This document shows, in pieces, positions 23,201 to 55,309 of a stretch of 64,000 nt of DNA. The translations under genes and the position numbers were made by a program. The stretch is from contig JAPDFW010000044.1 in the NCBI GenBank assembly GCA_028826165.1, forward strand, positions 594,618-658,617, read 5' to 3'. Numbering within the stretch: position 1 is the stretch's first letter; each line of letters begins with the position of its first letter. The notes below the pieces were generated by a model. That model had not been told where the DNA came from, ran no database searches, and worked only from the letters and a program-made list of their open reading frames with translations. The stretch comes from Anaeramoeba ignava BMAN. Its lineage: Eukaryota; Protista; Anaeramoebae.

Positions 23201-24114
23201 TATCTTTCTCAAGCTCTTTTTCTCAATCATATCAAGATTTTTTCTTGAAAACATCAGCAAATCAACCAAATATGGATAAATCCTTAACGAAACAAGAAAT
23301 ATCACCCTTTACGCTTTTGAAGGAAAAATTATTCGCGCCAAAACGCAAAAATATCGGCGTATTTGGCCCATCTTTGCGGAGTATTTCAGACTCAGTATGC
23401 ATGTCTGAAGACGGAGCGTTTTTGATTTCTTGCTGCTATTGCGACGACAGCTTCAAAATATTTCGGTCTAACGGGATGAACCTATTGCAAAGCATTGTGT
23501 ATCATCGGGATATAGTGACCTGTATTAAATACGACTCGGGTTTTCTTGTGACAGGATCACGAGACACTACTGTAATAATTTGGGAATTTGACTCGGCAAA
23601 GGGGAGCATAAATACCCAGCCAAAGCATATAATCCATGGTCATCACGACGAGATCACATCAATTGATATTGATGCCAAATTGGATATTTTGGTGACTGGA
23701 TCCAAAAACGGAATTTGCATGATGCACACTTTATCAACTGGAAGATATGTTCATACTATTATTGATGACAACTCAAGAATTGTGTCCCTAATTCGAATTT
23801 CCCAAGACGGCCACATTGTTGTCTTTACAGAACCTGATTACAAACTCGAAGTTTTTTCCGTTAATTTTAAACTGTTGGTTTCTAAAAAAATTAAAACTAG
23901 AATTCTTTGCTTGTCAATTACAAAAGATTCTGAATTGATTATTTTTGGTACAATTGATGGACATTTGGATCTCTTGAATCTTTATGATCTTTCAATAAAA
24001 AAGGCTTCCAAATTCAATGAACCGATTTATTCATTAGTTTTTCTTGCAAACGATCCATTTATTCTTGCAGGATCTAAATCTGGAAAACTTTATATAATTT
24101 TATTTTATTTTTAA
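11240..24114 (+). CDS. Large BEACH-domain protein (neurobeachin/LRBA/NBEAL/Lvs family): ConA-like, ARM-like, PH, BEACH, WD40
   Basis: ConA-like WPSNKGYSFSTWLRFD...FYGQMG; PH RRYTLLHTALEIF; BEACH WEARQISNFDYLMKLNTIASRSYNDLGQYPVFPWIL, YGTHYS, SDVKELIPEFFYLPEF, FGQTP; WD repeats. Introns at about 11413-12585, 12890-12977, 13217-13324, 13488-13558, 14072-14163, 14808-14882 and 21639-22441. 1-nt frameshift at about 20126. Confidence 0.93.
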
Positions 24115-31965: not shown

Positions 31966-32179
31966 TATTTTTATTTTAAATTTAATAATAACAACAATAA
32001 CAAAAAATAAAAAAAAGAAGAAAAAAAATGAAAAAAAATTTTTTCTTCTTTTTCATTTTTCATTTTTCTTCTTTTTCTTTTTTAAATTAAATTAAATTAA
32101 AAAAAAAGAGGAAAAAAAAAAAACTTTTTAAAAACAACAAAACAACAAAACAAAATTAAAAATTAATCAAAAATTAAAA

Positions 32180-34714
32180 ATGAGCACACAAAATCAAAGT
32201 GATAGACAATTTATCAGAAAAAATCAAAATCAAAATGATAGACAATTTAGCAGAACAAATCAAAATCAAGGTGATAGGCAATTTAACAGACAAAATCAAA
32301 GTGATAGACAATTTAGCAGAACAAACCAAAATCAAAATCAAAATCAAAATCAAAATCATGGACAATTTAACAGACAAAATCAAAATAAAAATGTTATGCA
32401 ATTTAACAGACAAAATGAAAATGATGAATATTCTATTGGAAAAAAGGATTATAAATTAAATACAGGAGAAATTGAAGTTTTTGAACTTGATAAAAAACAA
32501 ATTTATAATTATGTTAAAAATTTTGAAGAAATGGGTGTTCCAAAAAATTTAACTGAAATTTTACATCAAATGGGAATTGAAAAACCATCAAAAATACAAG
32601 GAGTTTCAATACCATATATTTTAGATGGAAGGTAAATATTATATATATTTATATTTATATTTATATTTATATTTATATTTATTTTTATATTTATATTTAT
32701 ATTTATATTTATATTTATATTTATATTTATATTTATATTTATATTTATATTTATATTTATATTTATATTTATATTTATATTTATATTTATATTTATATTT
32801 ATATTTATATTTATAATTATAATTATATTTTGTATTTATATTTATAATTATATTTATATTTATATTTATATTTATATTGATATTTATATTTATATTTATA
32901 TTTATATTTTTATTTTAATTATTTAAATAGAAATGTAATTGGACAATCACAATCAGGAACTGGAAAAACTATTTCATTTTGTATTGGAATTCTTGATAAA
33001 TGTTCACCTGAAAAACATTTTCCTCAAGCAATTTGTGTTGCTCCAACAAGAGAATTAGCAAGACAAATTTCTGAAATTCTTACAATTTTTGCAACAGAAA
33101 TGAATTTAAAAGTTTTTAATGGAATTAAAGGGATTAAATATCAAGAAATGGGAAATATTAATCAACAAATTATTGTTGGAACACCTGGAACAATTCTTTT
33201 CTTAATCAAAAACAAAATTAATTCTCAAAATATCCGAATTTGTGTTTTGGATGAAGCAGATATTATGTTTGATAAACAAGGTCATCTTAAAGAAATTCAA
33301 CAAATTAGAAAATAGTAATTAATTTTAATTTTAATTTTAATTTTAATTTTAATAATAATTTTAATTTTAATTTTAATTTTAATTTTAATTTTAATTTTAA
33401 TTTTAAATTTTAATTTTAATTTTAATTTTAATATTAATTTTAATTTTAATTTTAATTTTAATTTTTAATTTTAATTTTAATTTTAATTTTAATTTTAATT
33501 ATAATTTTAATTGAATTAGTCTTTCAAGAGAAACTCAAATTCTTTTATTCAGTGCAACTTATCGAGAAGATATCAAAGAATTTGTTCAAAATTCAATTTC
33601 AAATCCAGTTCAAATATTTCTCAAAATAGAAGATATTACACTTGATTCAATAAAACAATATTATATTCATTGTGGTAATGAAGAAATGAAACAAAAAGCT
33701 TTATTAGATATGTATGATTTATTAAATCTTGAACAATCAGTTATATTTGTAAACAGAAGATACACAGCAAAACAATTATCACAAATAATGAGAGATGAAG
33801 GACATTCAGTTTCTGTTATTTTTGGAAGTGAAATGACTTTATTTGAAAGAGATCAAGTTACTGATGAATTTAGAAAAGGAGAAAGAAAAATTTTAATTAC
33901 AACTGATGTTTTTTCAAGAGGAATTGATATTACTACTGTTTCTATTGTTGTTAATTATGATATTCCTATTAATGCAAACAGAGAAGCTAATCCAGAAACT
34001 TATATTCATAGAATTGGAAGATCTGGTAGATTTGGTAGAACTGGAATTGCTATTAATATTATTGGTGATGATACTTCACTTGAACATTTACAAAAAATTT
34101 GTAGATATTTTAATATTGAAATAGAACAACTTGAAAAACCTGAAGATCTTGAAAAATTAAAACAAATTATAACAGCTCATGATACTAAACTATTAGATAC
34201 AAAATCTCAAAGGGAAACAGAACAAAAAGAAGTTAAAAATATAGATAATTTGGATAATTTAATTAATGCTATGGATTCCAATCAAAATCAAAATCAAAAT
34301 CAAAATCAAATTGAAGATCAAAACCAAAATCAAAATGAAATTCAAAATCAAAATCAAATTCAAATTCAAAATCAAAATCAAAATTCAAATCAAAATGAAA
34401 GACAATTTCAAAAACCAAATCAAAATCAAAATCAAAATCAAAAACCAAATCAAAATGATAGACAATTTAACAGACAAAATCAAAATGAAAAACCAAATCA
34501 AAATGATAGACAATTTAACAGAACAAACCAAAACCAAAATCAAATTCAAATTCAAAATCAAATTCAAATTCAAAATCAAATTCAAATTCAAATTCAAAAT
34601 CAAATTCAAAATCAATTGAAATCAAAACCAAAATTAAATTTAAAATTAGAATCAAAATCAGAATCAGAATCAGAATCAGAATCAAAATCAGAATCAGAAT
34701 CAGAATCAAATTAA
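32180..34714 (+). CDS. DDX19: DEAD-box mRNA-export helicase DDX19/Dbp5, copy 1
   Basis: Q motif [76 protein letters not shown]. Introns 32632-32930 and 33315-33519. Confidence 0.9.
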
Positions 34715-35163
34715 AATTCAAATTAAAAATCAAATTTATTGAATGTTTGGTTTTGTTTTGTTATAATTTCTTGAAGAAAATTAATTTATGAAAAAAAATT
34801 GATTTTCAAATTATTTTTATTATTTTCATAAGTTAAAAAATATACCAAAATCATCTAAGAATTAAACAATATTTCTTCTCAACTATTTCCATATAATTCA
34901 ATCTATTCCAAATTTTGAAAAGAAAAAAAGTTGGAAAGAGAACGAAAAATATCAAAAAAAAAGAAGAAGTTATTTGCTTTTTTAATTTTAATTTTAATAA
35001 CAAAAAAAATAAAAAAAAATTTTTTCTTCTTTTTCATTTTTCATTTTTCTTCTTTTTCTTTTTTAAATTAATTTAATTTAAAAAAAAAGAAAAAAAAAAT
35101 TTTTTTAAAAAACAAAAGCAACAAAACAACAAAACAAAATTAAAAATTAATCAAAAATTAAAA

Positions 35164-38100
35164 ATGAGCACACAAAATCAAAGTGATAGACAATTTATCA
35201 GAAAAAATCAAAATCAAAATCAAAATCAAGGTGATAGACAATTTAATAGACAAAATCAAAATCAAGGTGATAGACAATTTAACAGACAAAATCAAAATCA
35301 AAATCAAAATCAAAATGATAGACAATTTAATAGACAAAACCAAAATCAAAATCAAAATCAAAATGATAGACAATTTATCAGAACAAATCAAAATCAAAAT
35401 TATAGACAATTTAACAGAACAAACCAAAATCAAGGTGATAGACAATTTAACAGACAAAATCAAAATGAAAATATTAAACAATTTAACAGAAAAAATCAAA
35501 ATCAAAATGATGAATATTCTATTGGAAAAAAGGATTATAAATTAAATACAGGAGAAATTGAAGTTTTTGAACTTGATAAAAAACAAATTTATAATTATGT
35601 TAAAAGTTTTGAAGAAATGGGTGTTCCAAAAAATTTAACTGAAATTTTACATCAAATGGGAATTGAAAAACCATCAAAAATACAAGGAGTTTCAATACCA
35701 TATATTTTAGATGGAAGGTAAATATTATATATATTTATATTTATATTTATATTTATATTTATATTTATATTTATATTTATATTTATATTTATATTTATAT
35801 TTTGTATTTATATTAATATTTATATTTATATTTATATTTATATTTATAATTATATTTAGATTTATATTTATATTTATATTTATATTTATATTTATATTTA
35901 TATTTATATTTATATTTATATTTATATTTATATTTATATTTATATTTATATTTATATTTATATTTATATTTATATTTATATTTATATTTATATTTATATT
36001 TATATTTTTATATTTATAATTATATTTTATATTTATATTTTATAATTTATTATATTTATATTTATATTTTATAATTATATTTATATTTATATTTATATTT
36101 ATATTTATATTTATAATTTATATTTATAATTATATTTATATTTTATATTTATATTTATATTTATATTTATATTTATATTTATATTTATATTTATTTTTAT
36201 ATTTATATTTATATTTTTATATTTATATTTATATTTATTATTATATTTATATTTATATTTATATTTATATTTATAATTATATTTTATATTTTATATTTTA
36301 TATTTAATTTATATTTATTTTATTTATATTTATATTTATATTTTATATTTATATTTATATTTATATTTATATTTATATTTATATTTATATTTATATTTAT
36401 ATTTATATTTATATTTATATTTATATTTATATTTATATTTATATTTATATTTATATTTATATTTATATTTATATTTATATTTATATTTATATTTATATTT
36501 ATATTGATATTTATATTGATATTTATATTTATAATTATACTTATATTTATATTTATAATTATATTTTGTATTTATATTTATATTTATATTTTAATTATTT
36601 AAATAGAAATGTAATTGGACAATCACAATCAGGAACTGGAAAAACTATTTCATTTTGTATTGGAATTCTTGATAAATGTTCACCTGAAAAACATTTTCCT
36701 CAAGCAATTTGTGTTGCTCCAACAAGAGAATTAGCAAGACAAATTTCTGAAATTCTTACAATTTTTGCAACAGAAATGAATTTAAAAGTTTTTAATGGAA
36801 TTAAAGGGATTAAATATCAAGAAATGGGAAATATTAATCAACAAATTATTGTTGGAACACCTGGAACAATTCTTTTCTTAATCAAAAACAAAATTAATTC
36901 TCAAAATATCCGAATTTGTGTTTTGGATGAAGCAGATATTATGTTTGATAAACAAGGTCATCTTCAAGAAGTTCAACAAATTAGACAATAGTAATTATTT
37001 TTAATTTTATTTTTATTTTTAATTTCAATTTTAATTTTAATTTTAATTTTAATTTTAATTTTAATTTTAATTTTAATTTTAATTTTAATTTTAATTTTAA
37101 TTTTAATTTTAATTTAAATTTTAATTTTAATTTTAATTTTAATTTTAATTTTAATTTTAATTTTAATTTTAATTTTAATTTTAATTTTAATTTTAATTTT
37201 AATTTTATTTTTAATTTTATTTTTAATTTTAATTTTAATTTTAATTTTAATTTTAATTTTAATTTTAATTTTAAATTTTAATTTTAATTTTAATTTTAAT
37301 TTTAATTTTAATTTTAATTTTAATTTTAATTTTAATTCTAATTCTAATTTTAATTGAATTAGTCTTTCAAGAGAAACTCAAATTCTTTTATTCAGTGCAA
37401 TTTATCAAGAAGATATCAAAGAATTTATTCAAAATTCAATTCCAAATCCAGTTCAAATATTTCTCAAAATAGAAGATATTACACTTGATTCAATAAAACA
37501 ATTTTATATTCATTGTGGTAATGAAGAAATGAAACATAAAGCTTTATTAGATATGTATGATTTATTAAATCTTGAACAATCAGTTATATTTGTAAACAGA
37601 AGAGACACAGCAAAACAATTATCACAAATAATGAGAGATGAAGGACATTCAGTTTCTGTTATTTTTGGAACTGAAATGACTTTATTTGAAAGAGATCAAG
37701 TTACTGATGAATTTAGAAAAGGAGAAAGAAAAATTTTAATTACAACTGATGTTTTTTCAAGAGGAATTGATTTTACTACTGTTTCTATTGTTGTTAATTA
37801 TGATATTCCTATTAATACAAACAGAGAAGCTAATCCAGAAACTTATGTTCATAGAATTGGAAGATCTGGTAGATTTGGTAGAACTGGAATTGCTATTAAT
37901 ATTATTGGTGATGATACTTCATTTGAACATTTACAACAAATTTGTAGATATTTTAAGATTGAAATAGAACAACTTGAAAAACCTGAAGATCTTGAAAAAT
38001 TAAAACAAATTATAACAGCTCATGATAATAAACAATTAGATAAAAAATCTCAAAGGGAAACAGAACAAAAAGAAGCTAAAAATTTAGATAATTTGGATAA

Positions 38101-38575
38101 TTTAATTAATGCTATGGATTCCAATCAAAATCAAAATCAAAATGATAGACAATTTCAAAAACCAAATCAAAACCAAATTCAAAATGAAAACCAAAATCAA
38201 AATGAAATTCAAAATCAAAATCAAAATCAAAATCAAAATCAAAACCAAAATGATAGACAATTTCAAAAACCAAATCAAAACCAAATTCAAAATGAAAATC
38301 AAAATCAAAATGAAATTCAAAATCAAAATCAAAATCAAAATCAAAATCAAAACCAAAATGATAGACAATTTCAAAAACCAAATCAAAACCAAATTCAAAA
38401 TCAAAACCAAAATCAAAATCAAATTCAAAATCAAAATGAAAAACCAAACCAAAATCAAAATCAAAATCAAAATCAAAATCAAATTCAAAATCAAATTCAA
38501 AATCAATTGAAATCAAAACCAAAATTAAATTTAAAATTAGAATCAGAATCAGAATCAGAATCAGAATCAAATTAA
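35164..38575 (+). CDS. DDX19: DDX19/Dbp5, copy 2 (motif III reads SAI)
   Basis: Near-identical to copy 1. Introns 35718-36606 and 36991-37362. Confidence 0.88.
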
Positions 38576-39027
38576 AAATCAAATTAAAAATCAAATTTAT
38601 TGAATGTTTGGTTTTGTTTTGTTATAATTTCTTGAAGAAAATTAATTTATGAAAAAAAATTGATTTTCAAATTATTTTTATTATTTTCATAAGTTAAAAA
38701 ATATACCAAAATCATCTAAGAATTAAACAATATTTCTTCTCAACTATTTCCATATAATTCAATCTATTCCAAATTTTGAAAAGAAAAAAAGTTGGAAAGA
38801 GAACGAAAAATATCAAAAAAAAAGAAGAAGTTATTTGCTTTTTTAATTTTAATTTTAATAACAAAAAAAATAAAAAAAAATTTTTTCTTCTTTTTTTATT
38901 TTTTCATTTTTCTTCTTTTTCTTTTTTAAATTAAATTAATTTAAAAAAAAAGAAAAAAAAAATTTTTTTAAAAAACACAAAACAACAAAACAACAAAACA
39001 AAATTAAAAATTAATCAAAAATTAAAA

Positions 39028-41942
39028 ATGAGCACACAAAATCAAAGTGATAGACAATTTATCAGAAAAAATCAAAATCAAAATCAAAATCAAGGTGATA
39101 GACAATTTAATAGACAAAATCAAAATCAAGGTGATAGACAATTTAACAGACAAAATCAAAATCAAAATCAAAATCAAAATCAAGGTGATAGACAATTTAA
39201 TAGACAAAATCAAAATCAAGGTGATAGACAATTTAACAGACAAAATCAAAATCAAAATCAAAATGATAGACAATTTAATCAAATCAAAATGATAGACAAT
39301 TTATCAGAACAAATCAAAATCAAAATTATAGACAATTTAACAGAACAAACCAAAATCAAGGTGATAGACAATTTAACAGACAAAATCAAAATGAAAATAT
39401 TAAACAATTTATCAGAAAAAATCAAAATCAAAATGATGAATATTCTATTGGAAAAAAGGATTATAAATTAAATACAGGAGAAATTGAAGTTTTTGAACTT
39501 GATAAAAAACAAATTTATAATTATGTTAAAAGTTTTGAAGAAATGGGTGTTCCAAAAAATTTAACTGAAATTTTACATCAAATGGGAATTGAAAAACCAT
39601 CAAAAATACAAGGAGTTTCAATACCATATATTTTAGATGGAAGGTAAATATTATATATATTTATATTAATATTTATATTTATAATTATATTTATATTTAT
39701 ATTTATATTTATATTTATATTTATATTTATATTTATATTTATATTTATATTTATATTTATATTTATATTTATATTTATATTTATATTTATATTTTATTTT
39801 TATATTTATAATTATTTATATTTATATTTAATTTATATTTATATTTATATTTATATTTATATTTATATTGATATTGATATTGATATTTATATTTATATTT
39901 ATATTTATATTTATATTGATATTTATATTTATATTTATATTTATATTTATATTTATATTTATGTTTATATTTATTTATATTTATATTTATATTTATATTT
40001 ATATTTATATTTATATTTATATTTATAATTATATATTTATATTTATATTTATATTTATATTTATATTTATATTTATATTTATATTTATATTTATATTTAT
40101 ATTTATATTTATATTTATATTTATATTTATATTTATATTTATATTTATATTTATATTTATATTATTATTTATTTAATTATTTAATTATTTAAATAGAAAT
40201 GTAATTGGACAATCACAATCAGGAACTGGAAAAACTATTTCATTTTGTATTGGAATTCTTGATAAATGTTCACCTGAAAAACATTTTCCTCAAGCAATTT
40301 GTGTTGCTCCAACAAGAGAATTAGCAAGACAAATTTCTGAAATTCTTATAATTTTTGCAACAGAAATGAATTTAAAAGTTTTTAATGGAATTAAAGGGAT
40401 TAAATATCAAGAAATGGGAAATATTAATCAACAAATTATTGTTGGAACACCTGGAACAATTCTTTTCTTAATCAAAAACAAATTTAATTCTCAAAATATC
40501 CGAATTTGTGTTTTGGATGAAGCAGATATTATGTTTGATAAACAAGGTCATTTTCAAGAAGTTCAACAAATTAGACAATAGTAATTATTTTTAATTTTAA
40601 TTTTTAATTTTAATTTTAATTTTGATTTTAATTTTAATTTTAATTTTAATTTTAATTTTAATTTTAATTTTAATTTTAATTTTAATTTTAATTTTAATTT
40701 TAATTTTAATTTTAATTTTAATTTTAATTTTTAATTTTAATTTTAATTTTAATTTTAATTTTAATTTTAATTTTAATTTTAATTTTAATTTTAATTTTAA
40801 TTTTAATTTTAATTTTAATTTTAATTTTAATTTCAATTTTAATTTTAATTTTAATTTTAATTTTAATTTTAATTTTAATTTTAATTTTAATTTTTAATTT
40901 TAATTTTAATTTTAATTTTAATTTTAATTTTAATTTTAATTTTAATTTTAATTTTAATTCTAATTTTAATTGAATTAGTCTTTCAAGAGAAACTCAAATT
41001 CTTTTATTCAGTGCAACTTATCGAGAAGATATCAAAGAATTTGTTCAAAATTCAATTCCAAATCCAGTTCAAATATTTCTCAAAATAGAAGATATTAAAC
41101 TTGATTCAATAAAACAATTTTATATTCATTGTGGTAGTGAAGAAATGAAACATAAAGCTTTATTAGATATGTATGATTTATTAAATCTTGAACAATCAGT
41201 TATATTTGTAAACAGAAGAGACACAGCAAAACAATTATCACAAATAATGAGAGATGAAAAACATTCAGTTTCTGTTATTTTTGGAAGTGAAATGACTTTA
41301 TTTGAAAGAGATCAAATTACTGATGAATTTAGAAAAGGAGAAAGAAAAGTTTTAATTACAACTGATGTTTTTTCAAGAGGAATTGATGTTACTAATGTTT
41401 CTATTGTTGTTAATTATGATATTCCTATTAATGCAAACAGAGAAGCTAATCCAGAAACTTATATTCATAGAATTGGAAGATCTGGTAGATTTGGTAGAAC
41501 TGGAATTGCTATTAATATTATTGGTGATGATACTTCATTTGAACATTTACAACAAATTTGTAGATATTTTAAGATTGAAATAGAACAACTTGAAAAACCT
41601 GAAGATCTTGAAAAATTAAAACAAATTATAACAGCTCATGATAATAAACAATTAGATACAAATTCTCAAAAGGAAACAGAACAAAAAGAAGTTAAAAATA
41701 TAGATAATTTGGATAATTTAATTAATGTTATGGATTCCAATCAAAATCAAAATGAAAGACAATTTCAAAAACCAAATCAAAATCAAAATCAAAATCAAAA
41801 TCAAAACCAAAATGAAAGGCAATTTCAAAAACCAAATCAAAATGATAGACAATTTAACAGAACAAACCAAAATTCAAATCAAAATCAAAATCAAAACCAA
41901 AATCAAAATTTAAACCAAAATCAAAATCAAAATCAAAATTAA
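39028..41942 (+). CDS. DDX19: DDX19/Dbp5, copy 3 (frameshift in the N-terminal repeat, garbled 3' end; pseudogene or assembly error)
   Basis: Helicase core intact; introns 39644-40196 and 40581-40978. The frame is lost near 39280 and the C-terminal repeat decays into 41942-42900. Confidence 0.75.
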
Positions 41943-42900
41943 AATTAAAATCAAAAATCAAAATCAAATTCAAATTCAAAAACCAAATCAAATTCAAAAT
42001 CAAAACCAAAATCAAAATCAAAATGAAAGACAATTTCAAAAAAAACCAAAATCAAATTCAAAATCAAAAATCAAAATCAAAATCAAAATCAAAATCAAAA
42101 CCAAAATCAAAATCAAAATTAAAATCAAAATGAAAGACAATTTCAAAAACAAAACCAAAATCAAAATTAAAATTAAAATTAAAATCAAAATCAAAACCAA
42201 AATCAAAATCAAAATCAAAATCAAAATCAAAATCAAAAATCAAATCAAAAAAATCAAAATCAATTTCAAAAACCAAACCAAAAATTAAAATCAAAATCAA
42301 AATCAAAATTAAAATCAAAATCAAAATCAAAATCAAAATCAAAATCAAAATCAAAATCAAAATCAAAATCAAAATCAAAATCAAAATTAAAATCAAAATC
42401 AAAATCAAAATCAAAATCAAAATCAAAATCAAAATCAAAACCAAAATGAAAGACAATTTCAAAAACCAAATCAAAATCAAAATCAAAATTAAAATCAAAA
42501 TTAAAATCAAAATCAAAATTAAAATTAAAATTAAAATTAAAATCAAAATTAAAAATCAAAATAAAATCAAAAATTAAAAATCAAAATCAAAAAAAAAAAT
42601 CAAAATCAAAAACCAAAAATGAAAAAATTTCAAAATCAAAATCAAAAACAAAACCAAAATTAAAATCAAAATTAAAATCAAAATTAAAATTAAAATTAAA
42701 ATTAAAATTAAAATCAAAATTTAAATCAAAATCAAAATTAAAATTAAAATCAAAATCAAAATTAAAATTAAAATTAAAATTAGAATCAAAATTAAAATTA
42801 AAATTAAAATTAAAAATTTAAAATCAAAATTAAAACCAAAATTAAAATTAAAATCAAAATTAAAATTAAAATTAAAATTAAAATCAAAACAAAAATAAAA
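41943..42900. repeat. Degenerate (AAAATC/AAAATT)n tract containing fragments of the DDX19 C-terminal repeat
   Basis: Directly visible, with interspersed GAAAGACAATTTCAAAAAC units. Confidence 0.75.
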
Positions 42901-42960
42901 TTTGAAAGAAAAAAAGAATTGTTTTTGTTTTATTATTTTAGTTTTTGTATTTGATTGAAA

Positions 42961-45900
42961 TTATTTTTTAAATTGAAACCAAAATGGAATTTTATTTTCA
43001 TTCCATTTTCTAATAAGTGGAACAATTTGATCTTTTTCAAGTTCATTTAAATTTGAATTTGAAATCCAAAAAGATAAACAATCAAGTAATTTTTGGAATT
43101 GATTTTGATAATTTTCAAAAAGAGTTTTACTTGAAAAATATAAAAATGATTCAATAATAAAAGGAGTGATTTTATGAATTGGTGAATTTCCAATTATTGA
43201 TAACCATCTCCATGCATCTGAAATTGGAAAAGAATTATGATTATGTGAGAAAAGTGCTCCAAAAAATGATATAATTGAACTCATTCGATTAAAAAAATCT
43301 TTTTCATCTTCATTTTCTTCTATTCCCATTATTCGATTATATTCTTCATCGCTTTGATTTTCATTTGGACTTCCAAATGGAATTGTTAAAAAACATTTTG
43401 CGTTTAACATTCCAATAATAATTTGTGAAAATTCTCCAAATCCTCCATTAATAATTTCAATAACTAATGTTGAAAGATGAAGTCTTGAAATTCTTTCTTT
43501 TTTGTTACATTTTAACTTGATTTTTTGGAAAATATAATATGCAATATAAAGTAATGCTGATGATAATTTTTGAGGATCATTTTTGATTTTATTAAGTTCT
43601 TGTTTAATATTGGAAATTATTAAATTTGCGTTGTCTCCAGTGAACCTATTCAGCAATTTTTCAATTTTTGAATGTTCTTTTTCTGCTTCATTTATATAAA
43701 AATTGGACACTTGATTTTGATATAATTGAATTTGATTTCGGGTTTGTTGATAATATGTTTTAATTTGATTTTGAATTTGATTTTGATCTTCATTTTGATT
43801 TTGGTTTTGATCTTCATTTTGATTTTGATTTTGAATTTGATTTTGATTTTGATCTTCAATTTGATTTTGATCTTGATTTAAATTTTGATTTTGAATTTCA
43901 TTTTGATTTTGGTTTTGATTTTGAATTTCATTTTGATTTTGATTTTGATTTTGATCTTCATTTTGGTTTTGGTTTTGATTTTGAATTTCATTTTGATTTT
44001 GATTTTCAATTTCATTTTGATTTTGATCTTGATTTTGAATTTCAATTTGGTTTTGATTTTCAATTTCATTTTGATTTTGATTTTGATTTAAATTTTGATT
44101 TAAATTTTGATTTTGAATAAATTGTTGGAATTGATTTTGTAATTGATTTATCTGTTGTTGTAATTGGTTAATTGTTTTTTGATTTTCTTGATTTTCTTTT
44201 TCTTTTTGAATGATGAATTTGTTTTCATTTTTAAGTTTGTTTTCTAATTGGATAATTTTTTGTTGTAATTGATTAATCGTTTCTTGATTTGTTTCTTTTT
44301 GAATGATGAATTTATTTTGATTTTTAAGTTGGTTTTCGTGTTGTTTTATCTGTTGTTGTAATTGGTTAATTGTTTTTTGATTTTCTTGATTTTCTTTTTC
44401 TTTTTCATTTTGAAATTGAATCATTTTTTGTTGGAATTCAGATTTGAATTGAATCATCTGTTGTTGAAATTCAATTTCATTTTGATTCTGGGTTTTATCA
44501 TTTTGATTTTGATTTTTTTGTTTTTTTAAATAAGTAACTTGATTTTCTTGAATAATTTCTTGTTGATTTTCTTTTCTTTTATTTTTATTTCTTTCTCTTT
44601 TTGTTTGACTTCTTCTTTCTTTTCTTTTTGGAGTTTCTCTTTTTGGAGTTTTTGTTTTTATTAGTTCTTTTGTTTTTATTGGTTCTTTTGTTTTTATTAC
44701 TTGATTGGTTTTGGTTAAATTGTTTTTTCTTTGCATTGTTTTTTTTTTATCTTTAATATTCTTAATTAATTCATCATTTTCTTTTTGGTTTTGTTTAATT
44801 TCTTGTATTTTTTTTAACATATCATTTTTGTTTTCTTCTTCATTTTTTTGATTGAAAGAATTTGGAACAGATTCTTGAAAAATATTTTCTATTTTATTTT
44901 CTGTTTCAATAATTTCTTTGAATTTTTGATCTAAATTTTTTTTTTTGATCAAAATTTGTGAAATTCTTTTTTTGTTTTGTTCAAAATTAATTTTGTTTTT
45001 ATTTTGTTTTTCATAAATTATTTTTTTCATTTCTTTGAATTTTTGAATTAATTGTTTTAGATGGTTAAATTTATGAACCAATTTTTGAATTTGATTTTCA
45101 TCAACATTTTCTAATTCATTTTGATATTGATATTGATATTGATTTTCATTTTCATTTTCATTTTCATTTTCATTTATAGCTAATTTCTTTATATTATTGA
45201 TTTCTTCATTTTCATCTTCATCTTCATTTTGATTTTCTTTTTCGTTTTCATCTTCATTTTCATCTTCATCTTCAATAATTTTTTGAATTTCTAAAATATT
45301 TTGATTTTCTTTTTCATTATCTGAATAAAAATTTAAATCAATTTGTTTTTGAATTTTTGGTTTTGTTTGTAAATTTTCTGAAATTATTTTCAAAAATTGA
45401 TCTTTGGAATAATTTTGCTGGAATAATTCTTCAATTTTGTTTAAATTTAAATTTAAATTAATAACTGAAAGTACTTTGGAATTATAACAGATAATTTGAT
45501 TCGTAATTGTATTATGAATGGAATTTTTGTTTAATTTTTGTTTGTAATTAATGAAAATATTTGCTATATTTGATTGATTATTATTATTATTTAAAATATA
45601 AGTTAAGTAATGAATTAATTCATTTTTTTCCTTATTTATTTCTTGATTTTGAATATCTTTCCAATTTGGTTCTTGTATTTCATTTTGGAAATAAATTTTC
45701 ATTTCATTTTGAGTGTTTGTAATTAATAATATTCGGAAATGTTCATTTGAAATTGTTGAAATTGTTGAAATTTGATTGAATGAATTCTTAAAATTTTGTA
45801 AACTTTGTTTTTTTTCATGAGAATTGGAAACTTTTAAAGGAATAATAGAAAGTTTTTGAAGAGAAGGAATGAATGAATCTTTTTCAAATTTTGGTTTTTG

Positions 45901-46692
45901 TGTGATAATAAAATCTGTTTTCAGTTGAGAATTTTGTTTCCAATTAGAAATAATTTGAAGCCATTTTTGATTTTGAATTTGATTTTGAATTTGATTTTTA
46001 TTTTGAATTTGATTTTCATTTTGGTTTTCAGAAAATAATTTTTGAATTAAATTTGTTGAAATTTTTGACTTAAAAGGAATAAAAGGAGAAAGAAAAAATA
46101 TTTCATCTTGTGAAGTGCATAAATAAATCCCAAAATTTTCCCATAATCGATCTTCATAATTATTTCCAAAACAAAATCCAGTAACTTGAAATGTTTTTTG
46201 GAAAAAAATATTATTCCCAATTAAATCTTCAAAACGAAGTGATAAAAATTGTTCAGGTTTTTTTGGTTGATTGATTTCATAAATGTAAAGTTCATTAAGT
46301 GAAGTTAAAATAACCAAATGATTTTCAGAAAAAGGATGGAAATCAATTTGAATAATTTTGTTATTGATTTCAATTCCAAATTCTTTAACATAAAATGATT
46401 TTTCTTTTTGTAACATTTTTGATGGAATTTTAAAAATAAAACAATTAGATTCATTATAAAGAAGAACATCAGTTAATAAATCATTTGACTTGATATTTGT
46501 TATTGGTTTTAAAATTTGAGGTTGTTTTTCAAGAAGTAAATTAAATTGTTTTGGATCTTTTTCATTTAAATAAAATATTTTAAGATTTCCTAAAGATTCT
46601 TTTGAAGAAATTGATTCATTAAATAAAATTTGAGCAAATTTATGAATGAATAATAATTTAAAAGTATTTTTTGAATCAATTTCTTGATTCAT
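42961..46692 (-). CDS. Putative Nup88/Nup82 (N-terminal beta-propeller + coiled coil) - Gle1 (C-terminal domain) fusion nucleoporin, 1243 aa, single ORF
   Basis: N-terminal IIQIDFHPFSENHLVILTSLNELYIY and FCFG...WENFGIYLC...EIFFLSPFIP match Nup88/Nup82 propeller motifs. C-terminal GMLNAKCFLTIPF...EEYNRIMG...EDEKDFFNRMSSIISFFGAL...AWRWLS..N....ITPFIIESFL...L...YQNQFQKLL matches the GLE1 domain. Confidence 0.8.
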   Translation of the reverse strand: MNQEIDSKNTFKLLFIHKFAQILFNESISSKESLGNLKIFYLNEKDPKQFNLLLEKQPQILKPITNIKSNDLLTDVLLYNESNCFIFKIPSKMLQKEKSFYVKEFGIEINNKIIQIDFHPFSENHLVILTSLNELYIYEINQPKKPEQFLSLRFEDLIGNNIFFQKTFQVTGFCFGNNYEDRLWENFGIYLCTSQDEIFFLSPFIPFKSKISTNLIQKLFSENQNENQIQNKNQIQNQIQNQKWLQIISNWKQNSQLKTDFIITQKPKFEKDSFIPSLQKLSIIPLKVSNSHEKKQSLQNFKNSFNQISTISTISNEHFRILLITNTQNEMKIYFQNEIQEPNWKDIQNQEINKEKNELIHYLTYILNNNNNQSNIANIFINYKQKLNKNSIHNTITNQIICYNSKVLSVINLNLNLNKIEELFQQNYSKDQFLKIISENLQTKPKIQKQIDLNFYSDNEKENQNILEIQKIIEDEDENEDENEKENQNEDEDENEEINNIKKLAINENENENENENQYQYQYQNELENVDENQIQKLVHKFNHLKQLIQKFKEMKKIIYEKQNKNKINFEQNKKRISQILIKKKNLDQKFKEIIETENKIENIFQESVPNSFNQKNEEENKNDMLKKIQEIKQNQKENDELIKNIKDKKKTMQRKNNLTKTNQVIKTKEPIKTKELIKTKTPKRETPKRKERRSQTKRERNKNKRKENQQEIIQENQVTYLKKQKNQNQNDKTQNQNEIEFQQQMIQFKSEFQQKMIQFQNEKEKENQENQKTINQLQQQIKQHENQLKNQNKFIIQKETNQETINQLQQKIIQLENKLKNENKFIIQKEKENQENQKTINQLQQQINQLQNQFQQFIQNQNLNQNLNQNQNQNEIENQNQIEIQNQDQNQNEIENQNQNEIQNQNQNQNEDQNQNQNQNEIQNQNQNQNEIQNQNLNQDQNQIEDQNQNQIQNQNQNEDQNQNQNEDQNQIQNQIKTYYQQTRNQIQLYQNQVSNFYINEAEKEHSKIEKLLNRFTGDNANLIISNIKQELNKIKNDPQKLSSALLYIAYYIFQKIKLKCNKKERISRLHLSTLVIEIINGGFGEFSQIIIGMLNAKCFLTIPFGSPNENQSDEEYNRIMGIEENEDEKDFFNRMSSIISFFGALFSHNHNSFPISDAWRWLSIIGNSPIHKITPFIIESFLYFSSKTLFENYQNQFQKLLDCLSFWISNSNLNELEKDQIVPLIRKWNENKIPFWFQFKK

Positions 46693-46849
46693 TTTTTATT
46701 TAAAAAAAAATGAAAAAGAAAAAAAATGAAAAAAAATTTTTTATTTATTTTTTATTTATTTTTAATTTTTCTTCTTTTTATTTTTTTTTTCTCCTTTTAA
46801 TAAAAAAAATAATTTTAATCAAAAATATATATATAATAAAATAATAATT

Positions 46850-47905
46850 AATTTATTATTTTGCAATAAAATTAATCAAAAAATAATTTAAAAAAGTATT
46901 TATTATTAATATTAAATAATTATTATTAAAAATAATGAAATAAATTTAATTAAAATATTTTATTTATTAATTTACTTAATTTTTAATAATAATTAATTTA
47001 CTATTTTATAAATAAAATTAATTAACAAACAATTTAAAAAAGTATTTATTATTAATATTAAAATAATTATTATTATAAATAATGAAATAAATTTAATTAA
47101 AATATTTTATTTATTAATTTATTTAATTTTTAATTATAATTAATTTACTATTTTGCAATAAAATTAATTAAAAATAATTTAAAAAGTATTTATTATTAAT
47201 ATTAAATTAATATTATTATAAAAAGGAAATAAAATTAATTAAAATATTTTATTTATTAATTTATTTAATTTTTAATAATAATTAATTTATTATTTTGCAA
47301 TAAAATTAATCAAAAATAATTTAAAAATAATTTATTATTAATATTAAATAAAGAAATTATTATTATTAAGAATAAAAAAGAAATAAAATTAATTAAAATA
47401 TTTTATTTATTAATTTATTTAATTTTTAATTATAATTAATTTATTATTTTGCAATAAAATTAATCAAAAACAATTTAAAAAGTATTTATTATTAATATTA
47501 AATAAATTATTATTAAAAATAATGAAATAAAATTAATTAAAATATTTTATTTATTAATTTATTTAATTTTTAATTATAATTAATTTATTATTTTTAAATA
47601 AAATTAAAAAAAAAAAACAATTAATTAAAAAAGTATTTATTATTAATATTAAATAATTATTATTAAAAATAAAGAAATAAAATTAATTAAAATATTTTAT
47701 TTATTAATTTATTTAATTTTTAATTATAATTAATTTATTATTTTACAATAAAATTAATTAAAAAACAATTTAAAAAAGTATTTATTATTAATATTAAATA
47801 ATTATTATTAAAAATAAAGAAATAAAATTAATTAAAATATTTTATTTATTAATTTACTTAATTTTTAATTATAATTAATTTACTATTTTGCAATAAAATT
47901 AATTA
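46850..47905. repeat. AT-rich tandem minisatellite, ~7 units of ~147 bp, in a divergent intergenic region
   Basis: The anchor TTTTGCAATAAAATTAAT (or variant) recurs at about 46863, 47008, 47155, 47297, 47451, 47595, 47745 and 47890. Confidence 0.85.
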
Positions 47906-48001: not shown

Positions 48002-51000
48002 ATGTCAGTTGGAATTATTTATCCACCAAAAGATACAAGAAGTAAGTCATTCTTTTTAAAAAATTAAATTAAAAATTAAAATAAATTAAAAAAATTGTTT
48101 TAATTTAGAAATGATTGATACAACAGCAACGTTTGTTGCAAAAAACGGACCGAATTTTGAAAAGAACGTAATAGCAAAACACGCAAGAGATCCTAAATTT
48201 TCATTTTTTAATCAAGCAGATCCTTTTCATGCTTATTATCAAAGACAAGTTGAACTTGAAAAAAAAACTTGAAAACGAACAAAAAACAAAAATTGAAAAA
48301 ATAAAAGGAAATAAAATTGAAACCAATTCAAACAATAATATTATTCAAGAAACAGAAGAAGATTCTCAAAATTTAGAATCTTTTTTAGAAAATGAAAATC
48401 AAAATCAAATTGAAAAAAAACAAGAACAAAAAGTTAAAACGGAATTTGAACAATTAATTGATGAATTTAATGGTAAATTACCTAGATCTTTTCATACTCC
48501 TTCAAAACCTGATTCTAAATTGTTTGGTGTTACTTGTCCTATTCAAACAACAGCAATAACTTTGTAATTATTTTTCATTTTTAAAATTAAAATTAAAATT
48601 AAAATTAAAATTAAAATTAAAATTAAAATTAAAATTAAAATCAAAATTAAAATTTAATATTAAAATTAAAATTAAAATTAAAATTAAAATCAAAATTAAA
48701 ATTAAAATTAAAATTAAAATTAAAATTAAAATTAAAATTAAAATTAAAATTAAAATTAAAATTTAAAATTAAAATTAAAATTAAAATTAAAATTAAAATT
48801 AAAATTAAAATTAAAATTAAAATTAAAATTAAAATTAAAATTAAAATTAAAATTAAAATTAAAATTAATATTAAAATTAAAATTAAAATTAAAATTAATA
48901 TTAAAATTAAATAGAGATTTGATTAAACTTTCTGCTCAATATGTTTGTAGAAATGGAAAAACTTTTTCAACAGGTTTAATAATGAGAGAAAATCAAAATC
49001 CCCAATTTGAATTTTTTACAAAACAATCACCATTATATGGGATTTTTAATACTTTTATTGATCAATATTCGCATTGTTTAAATCCAAGACAAGAAACAAT
49101 TGAAATGTTAAAAAAATATTCAACAGATCCAATTTCAGTTTATAATTCAATTAAGCAACATTCTGATTGGATAAAATATCATGAAAACAAAATCAAACCA
49201 CAAGAAGAAAATGAAGATCGAGGTAAATATTTAATAATAATAATATATTTAATAATAATATAATATTTTTAATAATAATATTTTTAATAATAATATTTAA
49301 TAATAATATTTAATAATAATATTTAATAATAATATTTTTAATAATAATATTTAATAATAATATATTAATAATATTTAATAATAATATTTAATAATAATAT
49401 TTTTAATAATAATTTTTAATATTTTTAATATTTTTAATATTTTTAATAATATTTTTTAATAAAATATTTAATAATAATATTTAATAATAATATTTTTAAT
49501 AATATTTTTTAATATTTTTAGAAATTATGGATTTGATCGATTGGCAGAATTTTGTTATTGTTGATACTTTTGATTTCGAGGAAGATGAAAGTGAAAAGAA
49601 TGCTCAAACAAAATCTCAAGACCAAGAAATACTAGATGATATGGGAGACGATATGGAAATTGAAGATCAAAATAATTCTCAATTAACAACATCAGCATTT
49701 CCAATTGATTATAAAAATATTAAAAAAAAAGAAACACAAACACAAAACCAAAAATCAAACAAATTACCACAACTTTATCAAATCTCTCCAATTACAAACG
49801 AGAAAGTTCCATTAGATGAGTTCACAAAACATTTAAGATTGAGCTTGAAAAACAAAGAACAAGAAAAAATTGATAGAGAAGTTAAAAATCGCCCAATGGA
49901 TTCAAATCTGGCACCTTCAGAACAGATCTCTGGGTATTTGAACAAATTATCAGAAAAACGTCCTGATATTTTTGGTGATGGAGATGATAATTTTGAAGAT
50001 GAGGAAAACAAAGAGAAAAAGAAAGATACAGTTTACTGGGATGGTCACTTAAAAAGTATCCCGATAATTCATGCAAAAATGCAACAAAAAACACTTTCCA
50101 ATTTAGTTTCAAACACACAGCAATTGGGAGGAAATCAAGAGAATCCAGGATTTATTCAGCCTCCAGGAATGCAAGGATATGAACAGGTATCTGATATTTA
50201 CCAACAACAAAAACCAAATACAAATTTAAGTGGAAATTTAAGTGGAAATTTAAGTGGAAATTTAAATACAAATTTAAATACAAATTTAAACCCAATTCCA
50301 ACAAAAATTATAAATCAACCTTTAATTACAAATACACAACCAAACCCTATTCAAAATCCTCATTTTCATTCAAATCCAATAAATCCAATAAATCCAATAA
50401 ATCCAATAAATCCAATAAATCCAATAAATCCAATAAATCCAACATTCCCAAATACAGTTCAAAATCCCCGATTCAAAACACCCTCACAACCAACACCTTT
50501 TAATCCAAACATACAATTTCAACACAATCCAAATACAGCCCAAAATATTCAACAGATTCCAATAAACAGAATGGTTAATCCACAAGGACCTATTCCAGCA
50601 ATTTCTCATCAAGTAAATCAACAGAAACCAACACCTTCATTTAACAATCCAATAAACCAAAATTTTCAACATAATCCAATGATTCAAAATAATCAAGCAC
50701 AAGATAGAGTAGATGATCAAAATAAACGAGCAAGAACACAAAATTCACAACTTCTGCCGGAAAATATTTTTATTGAACAAACTGGAGAAAATATTGATAT
50801 TTCAATTCAAATTCCAAATTCACAAAATTCAAATAATTGGAAACTTAATGGGCAAGTTATTCATTTTGAAAATGTTAATATTAGAAGTAAAATTAGAGAA
50901 ATTAAGGAAATGATTGAAAAGGAAATTTTAATTCCTCCAAATAAACAAAAAATTAAATCACCAACTGGAATTTGGACAAAAGATTCAAAATCATTAGCTT

Positions 51001-51068
51001 TTTATAATTTTCCAAATGGTTCATTGATTCAACTTTCAGAAAAAAAAAGAGGAGGAAGAAAGAATTAA
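48002..51068 (+). CDS. SF3A1: Splicing factor 3A subunit 1 (Prp21/SAP114)
   Basis: MSVGIIYPPKDTR, SURP1 IDTTATFVAKNGPNFE...KFSFFNQADPFHAYY, SURP2 LIKLSAQYVCRNG...NPQFEF, IDWQNFVIVDT, RPDIFG, WDGH, and a C-terminal ubiquitin-like domain ending KKRGGRKN. Three introns; A-run frameshift at about 48260. Confidence 0.93.
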
Positions 51069-52019: not shown

Positions 52020-55000
52020 GCTTTCCAAATTTGGGTTCAAACTAACCTTTCAGATTCTTGTGGAGATTTTAGAAGTGTTATACATGGATTTGAAGATGGA
52101 GCTTGTTTAATTAATTTACTTCAAAATCTTAGTGGACAAAAGTATATCTTGATTTTTATATTCTCTATTTTATTCTTTTATTTTTATTTATATATATTTT
52201 ATTTATTTAGTATGAGAAATTTTATTACAAATCCAACATCTAAAGAAGATAAATTATCAAATGTAAAAATAGCTCTACAATTTGGCAAAAAATTAGGATT
52301 ACCATTACATATTTCTCCAAATGATATTATCGAACACAAAGAGAATAATATATTATTAATGGTATGGGAAATTGCAATGTTTTTCCGAATGAGAGAAATT
52401 CCTTATGGAGATTTCCAACCTGAAGAAATTTTACTTCCATGGTGTCAAATGTGTTCTGAACCTTTTGGTTTGGAAGTTTATGATTTAACTGATGGGTATT
52501 AAGCTTAATTTTTGATTTTTGATTTTTGTTTTCATGTTTATAAAAAAATTTTTATATTTTTTTTTGATTAGTCTTTTGGATGGAAAAATTTTCTGTGCAA
52601 TTATTGCTTTTCATAAACCTGATTTGATCCAAAAATCAATTTTTGAATCTGTATTATTAATTAAAAAAAAATCCATTTTTTTTTCAAATACATGAAATGA
52701 CCAAATTTTATTCAAATAAATTTTATTGAAATAAAATTTTTAATTGTTAATTATTACTAGCAACAAAAAAATGAAACATTTAAAGAAGTTTCTCGAGCTT
52801 GTGAAATATTAAGAATTCCTTTTATAATGGATATAGAAGATTTAGAAAAAGGAAAAATTGATAAAAAAGTCACACTTGTTTTTCTTGCAGATTTATATCA
52901 TAAATTTATAACAGAATCAGAAGTAAAAAAAAAAAAAGGAAAATTTCTTGTAATCGGAAAAAAACAGAATAATTTATTTATTTCTTTTATTTTTGAAAAA
53001 ATAATCAGTTGGAAAAATTGGGAGAATATATTGAAGAATATCAAAATAACCAAATTTTGCCTGATGAAATGCAACAAAAAGTGGCGATTCCACTTTCATT
53101 GAATTTGAAATCTTTTTTAACAAAGCATCCAACAACATTAAAAAAATCCGAAAGAAAATTACAAGAAAAAGTGAAAGAAATTGAAAAAAAGCATGAAGAA
53201 AAAATCATGGAGCTTTTTAACGAACTGAAGGCATCAGAAAAGCAAGTAAATCAACTGCGGGATGAACTTGAGAGACTCAAACAACCGAAACAAATGAAAA
53301 ACGAAGCAAAAATTGAGACACAAGAAGAAAAAGAAAAAAAAGAAGAAATTGAAAGACAAAAAAATGAGATTATCGCAAAAAACAAGGAAAAAATCAGCCA
53401 ATTGACAAAGGAAATCGAGGATCTTGACGAGCAATCGAGAGGCGAATCTTTCCAATATGCGCTTCAAATTGAAGATATGGAAACATCTGCAAAAAAACTT
53501 GAAGAGGAAATTGAGGAGATTGAAAAAAAACAAACAAAAGAAATTGAAGAACTAAAAGAGATTGCTGCAAACGAGCAAAAGCAACTTGAGGCGCAAGTTG
53601 AGGAGCTAAAAACGCAAGCGGAAAAACTGGAGAAAGAACTTGAAGAACAGCCAGAACCAGTTGAGATGGAGGACGATGAGCTGGATCAACTCAGACACAA
53701 CAGAGAGGAATTGGAAAGGCAAATGCAGGATTTGGAGCTGAAAATGCAGAGCACGCAAGAAAGCATGGAGGATTATAAGGAAAGCAGACAGGAACTTGAA
53801 GAGCAAATTGAGGAAAGTGAGAAGAAAAATTTGGGCGAAAAAAATACAATGGAAAATTATCTTCAGGAAATTCGAGAAGAAATTGAGCAATCCAAAGTGG
53901 AGATTATGCAAGAAGAATCTCGCGAGCAAGAATTGAAGCACACGCTTGCGAAGAAAGACGAGGAGCTTGAAGTGCTGAAAAAACAACTTGAAGATAAACT
54001 TGAGAATGAAAGATCAAATGAAAAAGAAGGAAAATTATTTTTGTTTATTCAAAATTTGGAGAAAAAAATTCAAGAGTCGGAATCGCGACTCAAACAATTT
54101 GAAAACTTGCATATGAAAAAGGAGCTTCAGAACCAGATCTTGAATAAAAAGAAAAATCAGATTGAGCAACTCATCCAAAAAAATGCGGAATTCAAATCAT
54201 TTACAGAATTGAACAAGAAAATCTACGAAGAAGAATCATTAAAACTTCAAGAAGAAAACGAACGGTTGAAAAAACAACTTGTTCATCAACGCGAAAAATT
54301 CGAAAAGGAGCTTTCGCAAAAATCCGAAGAAATCAAGCAATACACACGCTTGAATATCGAAAAGGAAGAAAGACAACAGGTTCTTGAAGAGGAAATTTCG
54401 GAAACAAAAAGCAAAATTATTTCGCAAAAAAAAATCCTCGATTCAAATTTGGAGAAATTGGAGGAGAAATTGAAGGAGGAAAGAACTAAATTCGAGCAAC
54501 TCCAAAAAGATAATGTTGCGTTGACTCGAAATCTTGAGGATGTGATTGCAAACTACAACTTCGATCTTGAATCGTTGAAGGAAGTTGTTGATGACACAAA
54601 AACACTTATTGAATCCAAAAAGAAAAAATCAAAGCAAGACAAATTATTACTTGAAAGCATTGATTTAATTTCAATCAAATTGGAGTATGAAAAACAAAAA
54701 TCGCAAGCGCAACAATTGCACACAGATTACGACTCTTTATCGCGAATGTTGAATGCGAAAATTGAGACAATTTCTTCGCATCGCAAACAAATTGCGCGAA
54801 TTGAAGAAAATAAAAAAATCAAATTGCATGATTTGACCCAACTGGAAAATAAATATGATATTCTTAACGAAAATTACCAAAGTTTACTTCGCTCCTCACA
54901 AACAAACTCCAAATCAGACGACAAAGAAAAGGAGCAACTATTGGCGCAATTGAATCAATATGAAGAAGTGATCCAAAAAACTTCGCGTCAGTTGATGTTC

Positions 55001-55309
55001 CTTCAATTAAGAGAAAAAGGCAAAAATTCTCCTCAAGATTCTATTGAAACAAGTGAAAAAGATCAATCCATTATTTTCGACATGAATATTGCAAACCAAC
55101 TTATTGAAAAACTTCGTAAATCCCTTGAAAGATCCCAATCAAAATTGAAGAAAGTTGAACAAGAAAAAGAACAAGTTGATCGTGAACTTCAAATTTCTCA
55201 AATTGAATTGAAACGTTTGGAAGAAATGAAGATCAAAACACAAAAATTGCATCAACAGAATCAACTTCTTGTTATTGAATTGGAAAGATTGGATTCTTTA
55301 ATGTTTTAG
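52020..55309 (+). CDS. Tandem calponin-homology (actin-binding) + long coiled-coil protein (alpha-actinin/cortexillin/interaptin-like); first exon unresolved
   Basis: Spliced AFQIWVQTNL...GFEDGACLINLLQNLSG...KLSNVKIALQF...ISPNDII...ILLMVWEI (CH1); ILLPWCQ...DLTDGLLDGKIFCAIIAFHKPDLI...LRIPFIMDIEDL...IDKKVTLVFLADLY (CH2); then a ~760-aa E/K/Q heptad exon. Confidence 0.8.

Follow-up and report, generated by a model that had tools for sequence, protein, structure and literature searches.

Have the mRNA-export helicase Dbp5/DDX19 and its activator Gle1 been kept side by side in Anaeramoeba ignava by selection, or are they neighbours by accident? The question arises from a 64,000-nucleotide stretch of the genome (positions 594618-658617 of contig C35, hereafter the window), for which an original prediction made from the sequence alone proposed that three tandem DDX19 copies on the + strand converge on an open reading frame (ORF) joining Nup88 to Gle1. 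This arrangement is borne out by the exon structures, by Pfam and by the presence of an ORF with a GLE1 domain. The reading that we favour, with moderate confidence, is that the genome's only Dbp5 gene has recently been triplicated and lies tail-to-tail with a single Nup88-Gle1 fusion gene, the adjacency of the two being accidental.

The window has a GC content of 10-30% and sits ~600 kb inside its contig, within an assembly of 42.8 Mb in 147 contigs that was built from Nanopore and Illumina data (PMC11550330). The genome as a whole is 80.65% A+T, with introns at 91.9% A+T and 15,022 predicted proteins, and the two described Anaeramoeba species (A. ignava and A. flamelloides) are ~37% identical in protein (PMC11550330).

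The convergent reading frame and its Nup88 and Gle1 parts

The ORF lies at 42961-46692 on the - strand and runs uninterrupted for 1243 codons in DNA of 19% GC. With 89.3 bits, its GLE1 domain lies above the Pfam cut-off of 24, the match taking in positions 12-248 of the 250 in the profile, and searching the PDB with this domain returned human GLE1 (E = 8e-10) and yeast Gle1 (E = 6e-6). When the whole genome was scanned, the GLE1 domain was matched once, at this ORF only. In the HMMER alignment the R..KK segment of the yeast protein, which we take to belong to the inositol hexakisphosphate (IP6) pocket shared with Dbp5, stands opposite M..AK, so that one of the two adjacent lysines is kept.

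Pfam gave no match in the N-terminal 500 residues nor in the middle of the ORF, and the Nup88 hidden Markov model (HMM) PF10168 matched neither the ORF protein nor any other place in the genome. A word-index search returned nothing for the N-terminal piece, nor for the Gle1 region of the full-length protein, a result that has no bearing on whether the fusion occurs elsewhere, and an ESM Atlas search with the entire ORF gave no usable match. ESM features indicated Nup88 at 0.91. An exhaustive phmmer search of 1.8 billion representatives found 30 matches (E = 1e-7 to 1e-3), mostly proteins of 700-780 residues, and PF10168 scored above its cut-off in nine of the ten best matches tested. The signature columns of this family are retained in the ORF (HP 119-120, E147, F173, W184, P203, P206 and P285), and a family profile run against the genome found this locus alone, matching residues 1-549 and reaching model position 555 of 699.

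Structure prediction gave a similar picture. An AlphaFold2 (AF2) model of the propeller, built from the phmmer alignment, has a predicted local distance difference test score (pLDDT) of 72.5 and a predicted template-modelling score (pTM) of 0.81. In a Foldseek comparison with the PDB the top 13 matches were all to Nup82/Nup88 or to chain W of nuclear pore complex (NPC) models (E = 2e-20 to 2e-9), with generic WD40 propellers scoring worse; they comprised chain W of the Dictyostelium and Arabidopsis pore models, the N-terminal domain of fungal Nup82 and that of human NUP88. Judged by chain lengths, we infer that chain W is Nup88. The ESM Atlas, queried with the propeller, gave template-modelling scores (TM-scores) of 0.74-0.76 to Nup88/Nup82 clusters. 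Given that the phmmer search, the motif columns and the fold search are concordant, the N-terminus can be identified as a Nup82/Nup88-type seven-bladed propeller.

The region between the two domains was modelled by AF2 from the single sequence (residues 451-1243), and with a pLDDT of 48 the model served only as a hint of helicity. Nup82/Nup88 proteins end in a coiled coil that forms a bundle with Nup62/Nsp1 and Nup214/Nup159; here long helices are predicted for residues 532-662 (pLDDT ~50), tandem repeats occupy residues ~770-880 and an NQ run follows at ~880-955; residues 470-880 as a whole are not a simple repeat. Between two sets of long helices lies a strongly basic stretch rich in K, R, T and P (residues ~663-700, positions 44593-44706) that is predicted to be non-helical. 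This stretch may be the seam of two ancestral genes or a nuclear-localisation-like signal.

The ORF reads as a Nup88 propeller followed by a helical rod and a GLE1 domain, these being the sole detectable Nup88 and Gle1 of the genome. The predicted fusion thus stands, its GLE1 part by Pfam and its Nup88 label by homology and fold. It looks real and unusual, a new architecture of known nucleoporins, and is for us the main point of interest of the locus. A full-text literature search found no description of a natural Nup88-Gle1 fusion, nor of any linkage between Dbp5 and Gle1. A 2010 survey listed Gle1 in excavates but not Nup88 (PMC2951903), which is consistent with a Nup88 too divergent for standard models.

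The Dbp5/DDX19 array

The helicase array spans 32180-41942 on the + strand and consists of three DEAD-box genes of three exons each (c1, c2 and c3), in whose exons Pfam found the DEAD and Helicase_C domains. Single exons, taken separately, and not the spliced protein, were used for all helicase searches and for the tree. Searched against the PDB, exon 3 matched yeast Dbp5 at 186.6 bits and DDX19B at 182 bits, as against 162 bits for eIF4A, and exon 2 matched Dbp5/DDX19 at 94 bits as against 74 bits. In an index of 5.8 billion proteins the best matches (214-190 bits, 44-48% identical) were JGI-named DDX19/DBP5 proteins, with eIF4A and FAL1 proteins lower at 165-172 bits. A maximum-likelihood tree of the exon 3 region placed the three copies within the DDX19-type group with support of 99/95, apart from eIF4A/FAL1. 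The original prediction had named eIF4A/DDX48 beforehand as the identity to be set against DDX19, and both tree and bit scores place the helicases with DDX19.

The genome has its own eIF4A gene on contig C103 (two nearby copies) and an eIF4A-III gene on contig C13, and an eIF4A or eIF4A-III identity of the array was rejected on the strength of the tree and of these separate genes. Beyond the three copies the next paralogue in the genome is 37% identical, and the array holds the only Dbp5-type loci. The core motifs are complete in c1 and c3: the Q motif, motif I (SGTGKT), motif II (DEAD), motif III (SAT) and motif VI (HRIGRxGR). On sequence grounds, the array can be taken to be the genome's set of Dbp5 orthologues.

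The repeat unit (repeat family D9) begins ~160 nucleotides (nt) 5' of each ATG and includes a 287-nt 3' flank common to c1 and c2. The conserved exon cores of the three copies are 97-99% identical, and the duplicated spacer, which is present twice, differs at 5 of 449 sites (1.1%). Because exon cores and spacers have diverged so little, the triplication is recent and tandem in origin. The introns differ in length from copy to copy (Table 1), and we are therefore dealing with three loci rather than one gene counted three times. That the copies are assembler duplicates of one gene was rejected in view of 35 coding differences, the differing intron lengths and the two spacers.

All helicase introns have GT..AG borders and an interior of pure microsatellite. 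Those of c1 (32632-32930 and 33315-33519) and their counterparts in c2 and c3 are nearly one microsatellite each (TATATT-type and TAATTT-type), and their lengths vary up to three-fold between copies whose exons are 97-99% identical. Both ends of the helicase bear the same low-complexity repeat, NQNQ with DRQF(N/Q) inserts; at the DNA level this is an (AATCAA)n microsatellite into which GATAGACAATTT is inserted. The number of end repeats varies by copy, exon 1 being 452 nt in c1, 554 nt in c2 and 616 nt in c3.

The three copies are not in the same state. Copy c1 shows no unique departure from the conserved residues, I124 being common to c1 and c2. In c2 the SAT of motif III, which is kept in 11 of 11 Dbp5 relatives, has become SAI (codon 37400-37402), and there are further departures at conserved residues (I137F and I162V). 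In c3, exon 1 lacks one A from an A-run at ~39281-39283, within the NQ/DRQF repeat, so that the frame is shifted: the exon is in frame 1, while exon 1 of c1 and c2 is in frame 2. This 1-nt deletion may have arisen by genuine slippage or be an error of the long reads. The same copy carries G94K, where 10 of 11 Dbp5 relatives have the conserved glycine, and stops early at TAA 41940, without the end of the tail and the 3' flank common to c1 and c2.

The copies were compared over 443 conserved codons, in which 35-36 nucleotide sites vary (17/16/3 by codon position), and not one of the differences is synonymous. Under the observed GC-to-AT-biased spectrum 4.5 synonymous changes would be expected, and the probability of finding none is 0.005; a stricter null, in which third-position AT-to-GC changes are barred by codon bias, gave P ~0.08 in a hand calculation. 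Of the 35 nonsynonymous sites, 28 fall in exon 3, the part coding for RecA2 and the C-terminus. At minimum, these comparisons point to no purifying selection on the helicase copies, and positive selection on them is possible. The copies would then be drifting or diversifying, with c1 as the likely working gene, c2 bearing an altered motif III and c3 probably dying.

Two side observations concern other DEAD-box loci. The eIF4A-type matches on C103 (123089-123373 and 126869-127141) lie ~3.8 kb apart, a spacing like that of the Dbp5 array, which suggests a second tandemly duplicated DEAD-box gene. On an unrelated eukaryotic metagenome contig (L012:7873-10690), a 565-residue ORF with the intein or homing-endonuclease domains Hom_end_hint and Hom_end lies immediately upstream of a Dbp5 fragment whose only domain is Helicase_C; an intein or homing endonuclease may have inserted itself into a Dbp5 gene there.

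Table 1. Positions of the helicase copies, the fusion ORF and adjoining features in the window
Feature	Position	Strand	Description
Tandem unit 1	32021..35001	+	Dbp5/DDX19 copy c1, the most canonical; SAT, EGH and other conserved positions intact
c1 exons	32180-32631, 32931-33314, 33520-34714	+	introns of 299 and 205 nt
Tandem unit 2	35002..38864	+	copy c2, ORF intact, motif III altered
c2 exons	35164-35717, 36607-36990, 37363-38575	+	introns of 889 and 372 nt
Tandem unit 3	38865..41942	+	copy c3, frameshifted, early stop in tail
c3 exons	39028-39643, 40197-40580, 40979-41942	+	introns of 553 and 398 nt
Conserved coding parts compared	32432-34270, 35518-38113, 39444-41729	+	used for copy-to-copy differences
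End repeats	exon 1s and exon 3 tails 34270-34714, 38113-38575, 41729-41942	+	low-complexity repeat
Degenerate (AATCAA)n stretch	41943..42900	+	many CAA-to-TAA changes, three relics of the helicase tail motif
GLE1 domain, residues 968-1205	43078..43791	-	Pfam PF07817, E = 3e-25
Linker, residues 461-967	43792..45312	-	K/E/N/Q-rich; long helices predicted (low confidence)
Nup82/Nup88-type beta-propeller, residues 1-460	45313..46692	-	supported by phmmer, motif columns and fold search
SF3A1/Prp21-like gene	48111..51068	+	two Surp modules, PRP21-like region, ubiquitin-like C-terminus

How the two loci came to be neighbours

The c3 stop codon (41940-41942) and the Gle1 stop codon (42961-42963) are separated by ~1 kb containing many TAA codons. 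The low-complexity junction noted in the original prediction is indeed there, and could be read directly as degenerate (AATCAA)n. Since three relics of the helicase tail motif are preserved in it, the gap is a decayed or expanded c3 tail and not foreign DNA. On its other side the fusion gene is flanked by the predicted SF3A1 gene, which is divergent from it and starts ~1.4 kb from the ATG of the fusion ORF. Here a Surp domain was matched at E = 4e-13 and PRP21_like_P at 27.1 bits, slightly below the 28.2 cut-off; a second Surp-like ORF (48111-48272) and the ubiquitin-like end were recognised by eye.

The original prediction had gone on to propose a functional gene cluster. The gene identities and the adjacency hold up; a functional cluster is the less likely reading, the two loci being convergent, their partners dispersed and the nearest helicase copy the most degraded one. 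Convergent orientation means that the Dbp5 array and the fusion gene share no promoter. Nsp1/Nup62 (Nsp1_C) was found on contig C88 and the Nup98 autoproteolytic domain on C147, and the Nup214/Nup159 propeller HMM yielded no Nup214 candidate on the contig of the window. The matches that this HMM did return were weak and belonged to generic WD40 proteins; bacterial controls were positive too, and the matches were rejected as Nup214. In other eukaryotes, no GLE1 was found within 10 kb of Dbp5 on five contigs. By a rough estimate that takes thousands of known partner pairs into account, chance should make neighbours of one or two such pairs in a genome of ~15,000 genes. With convergent orientation, separate promoters and no other pathway genes nearby, the Dbp5 array and the gene of its activator most likely came to adjoin each other by accident.

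Several points weigh against this reading. The chance of direct adjacency for the Dbp5/Gle1 pair as such is ~2/15,022, or 1.3e-4 (gene count from PMC11550330). The Gle1-Nup88 fusion occurs in the same lineage, so selection for physical coupling has acted there at least once. Differences that are all nonsynonymous could mean that the helicase copies are adapting, not drifting. In addition, the assembly is the sole basis for one fusion transcript, for the number of copies in the array and for the frameshift in c3, the last being a homopolymer indel, typical of long-read error.

Were the cluster selected, linkage would be kept for co-regulation in one chromatin domain, for co-inheritance of co-adapted alleles or for matched copy number. 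We consider this unlikely, although the low odds of the pair's adjacency and the lineage-specific drive towards coupling that the fusion represents would both speak for it, as would the RNA-processing gene SF3A1 on the other side of the fusion gene. The concentration of 28 of the 35 nonsynonymous sites in exon 3 argues in the same direction: the encoded RecA2 domain is the one that touches Gle1 in solved Dbp5-Gle1 complexes. Against it stand the convergent orientation without a common promoter, the degraded state of c3, which is the copy adjoining Gle1, the location of Nup62 and Nup98 on other contigs, the lack of a Nup214 candidate on this one, the five unlinked Dbp5 contigs of other eukaryotes and the one or two chance pairs expected per genome. 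Matched dosage, which the original prediction had also entertained, fits poorly, since the helicase copies show no purifying selection. A bolder version, to which we give little credence, is a co-evolving mRNA-export 'supergene': with the activator joined to the pore scaffold, the neighbouring helicase gene would have been amplified into paralogues that are positively selected on the Gle1-facing RecA2 domain, and linkage would ensure that helicase alleles are inherited with the activator alleles that match them. In a related version the fusion arose early among metamonads, which would explain why Nup88 has gone undetected in excavates (PMC2951903).

The remaining alternatives concern the loci themselves. 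One frame need not mean one protein: separate Nup88-like and Gle1 products could arise from a promoter, start or 3' end within the ORF, with the linker as low-complexity read-through. The low-complexity middle 500 residues with their low-confidence model are compatible with this, and the basic non-helical stretch could mark a former gene boundary. Yet random sequence of 19% GC has about one stop per 10 codons, as against 1243 codons without one here; the linker is more than a simple repeat over residues 470-880, and profile scans found no second Nup88 or Gle1 in the genome, so we regard separate products as distinctly improbable. We think it very improbable that the arrangement is an assembly artefact, whether a false join in the ~1 kb microsatellite, an inflated array or an indel error that makes or removes a feature of the frame. 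Such an artefact would fit the nature of the junction, a long degenerate microsatellite, and of the frameshift in c3, a 1-nt homopolymer change, and three public DNA runs of one sample, probably the source runs of the assembly, contain just 73-77% of the sampled words from 41000-46900; the runs on record include no RNA run. The copies nevertheless differ at 35 coding sites and in intron lengths, and the spacer is present twice, which argues for distinct loci; the microsatellite bears helicase tail motifs and so continues c3; and the assembly combines Nanopore with Illumina data (PMC11550330), with the window well inside its contig. We thus retain the reading of a recently triplicated Dbp5 gene lying by accident beside a Nup88-Gle1 fusion gene.

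Elsewhere in the window lie unrelated genes: RasGEF, neurobeachin, DENN, a short-chain dehydrogenase, a Cdc14-binding-type protein and a tyrosine phosphatase. The neurobeachin/BEACH-WD40 gene (14892-24114) extends over three long ORFs (14892-20168, 20144-21667 and 22450-24114), which are presumably separated by introns. A 766-residue open frame at 53009-55309 on the + strand has no Pfam match.

Comparison with known export platforms, fusions and clusters

In yeast and human, Gle1 and Nup88 are separate proteins whose genes lie on different chromosomes, and Gle1 is placed by separate adaptors (Nup42 and Nup155). In A. ignava the Nup88 part would anchor the fusion protein in the cytoplasmic-filament scaffold, so that Gle1 would be covalently held at the pore exit. 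Dbp5 made from the neighbouring genes would be activated there by Gle1 and would strip export factors from the mRNA. Yeast and human differ in how Gle1 is brought next to Dbp5 at the pore exit, a matter still under debate, and a natural Gle1-Nup88 chain would offer a ready-made test of whether tethering the activator to the cytoplasmic-filament scaffold suffices. In a deep-branching anaerobe, the fusion would show that the mRNA-export platform can be built in another way. As for the neighbourhood of the two loci, it is a curiosity and not yet a principle, being so far indistinguishable from the one or two chance pairs of a 15,000-gene genome. That Dbp5 copies of such recent origin differ from one another exclusively by amino-acid-changing substitutions is a separate small puzzle.

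The yeast and human platform of Dbp5/DDX19, Gle1, Nup159/Nup214 and Nup82/Nup88 (3RRM, 3PBP, 6B4I and 7MNI) is the closest known system, and the same three protein families are met here. The difference is that Gle1 and Nup88 form one polypeptide, the Nup88 part of which is too divergent for Pfam. For the array the nearest parallel is human DDX19A/DDX19B, which are tandem duplicates: both cases involve a recent tandem duplication of the Dbp5 orthologue and near-identical neighbouring paralogues, but here there are three copies, one altered in motif III and one frameshifted, and they lie beside the activator gene.

Metabolic gene clusters of fungi and plants likewise bring functionally linked, non-homologous genes side by side. 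Here, however, the arrangement comprises just two loci in convergent orientation, and the rest of the pathway is scattered. The fusion itself resembles Rosetta-stone fusions in that two proteins of one assembly are made as one chain, each being single-copy in the genome, with the difference that it is known here from one species.

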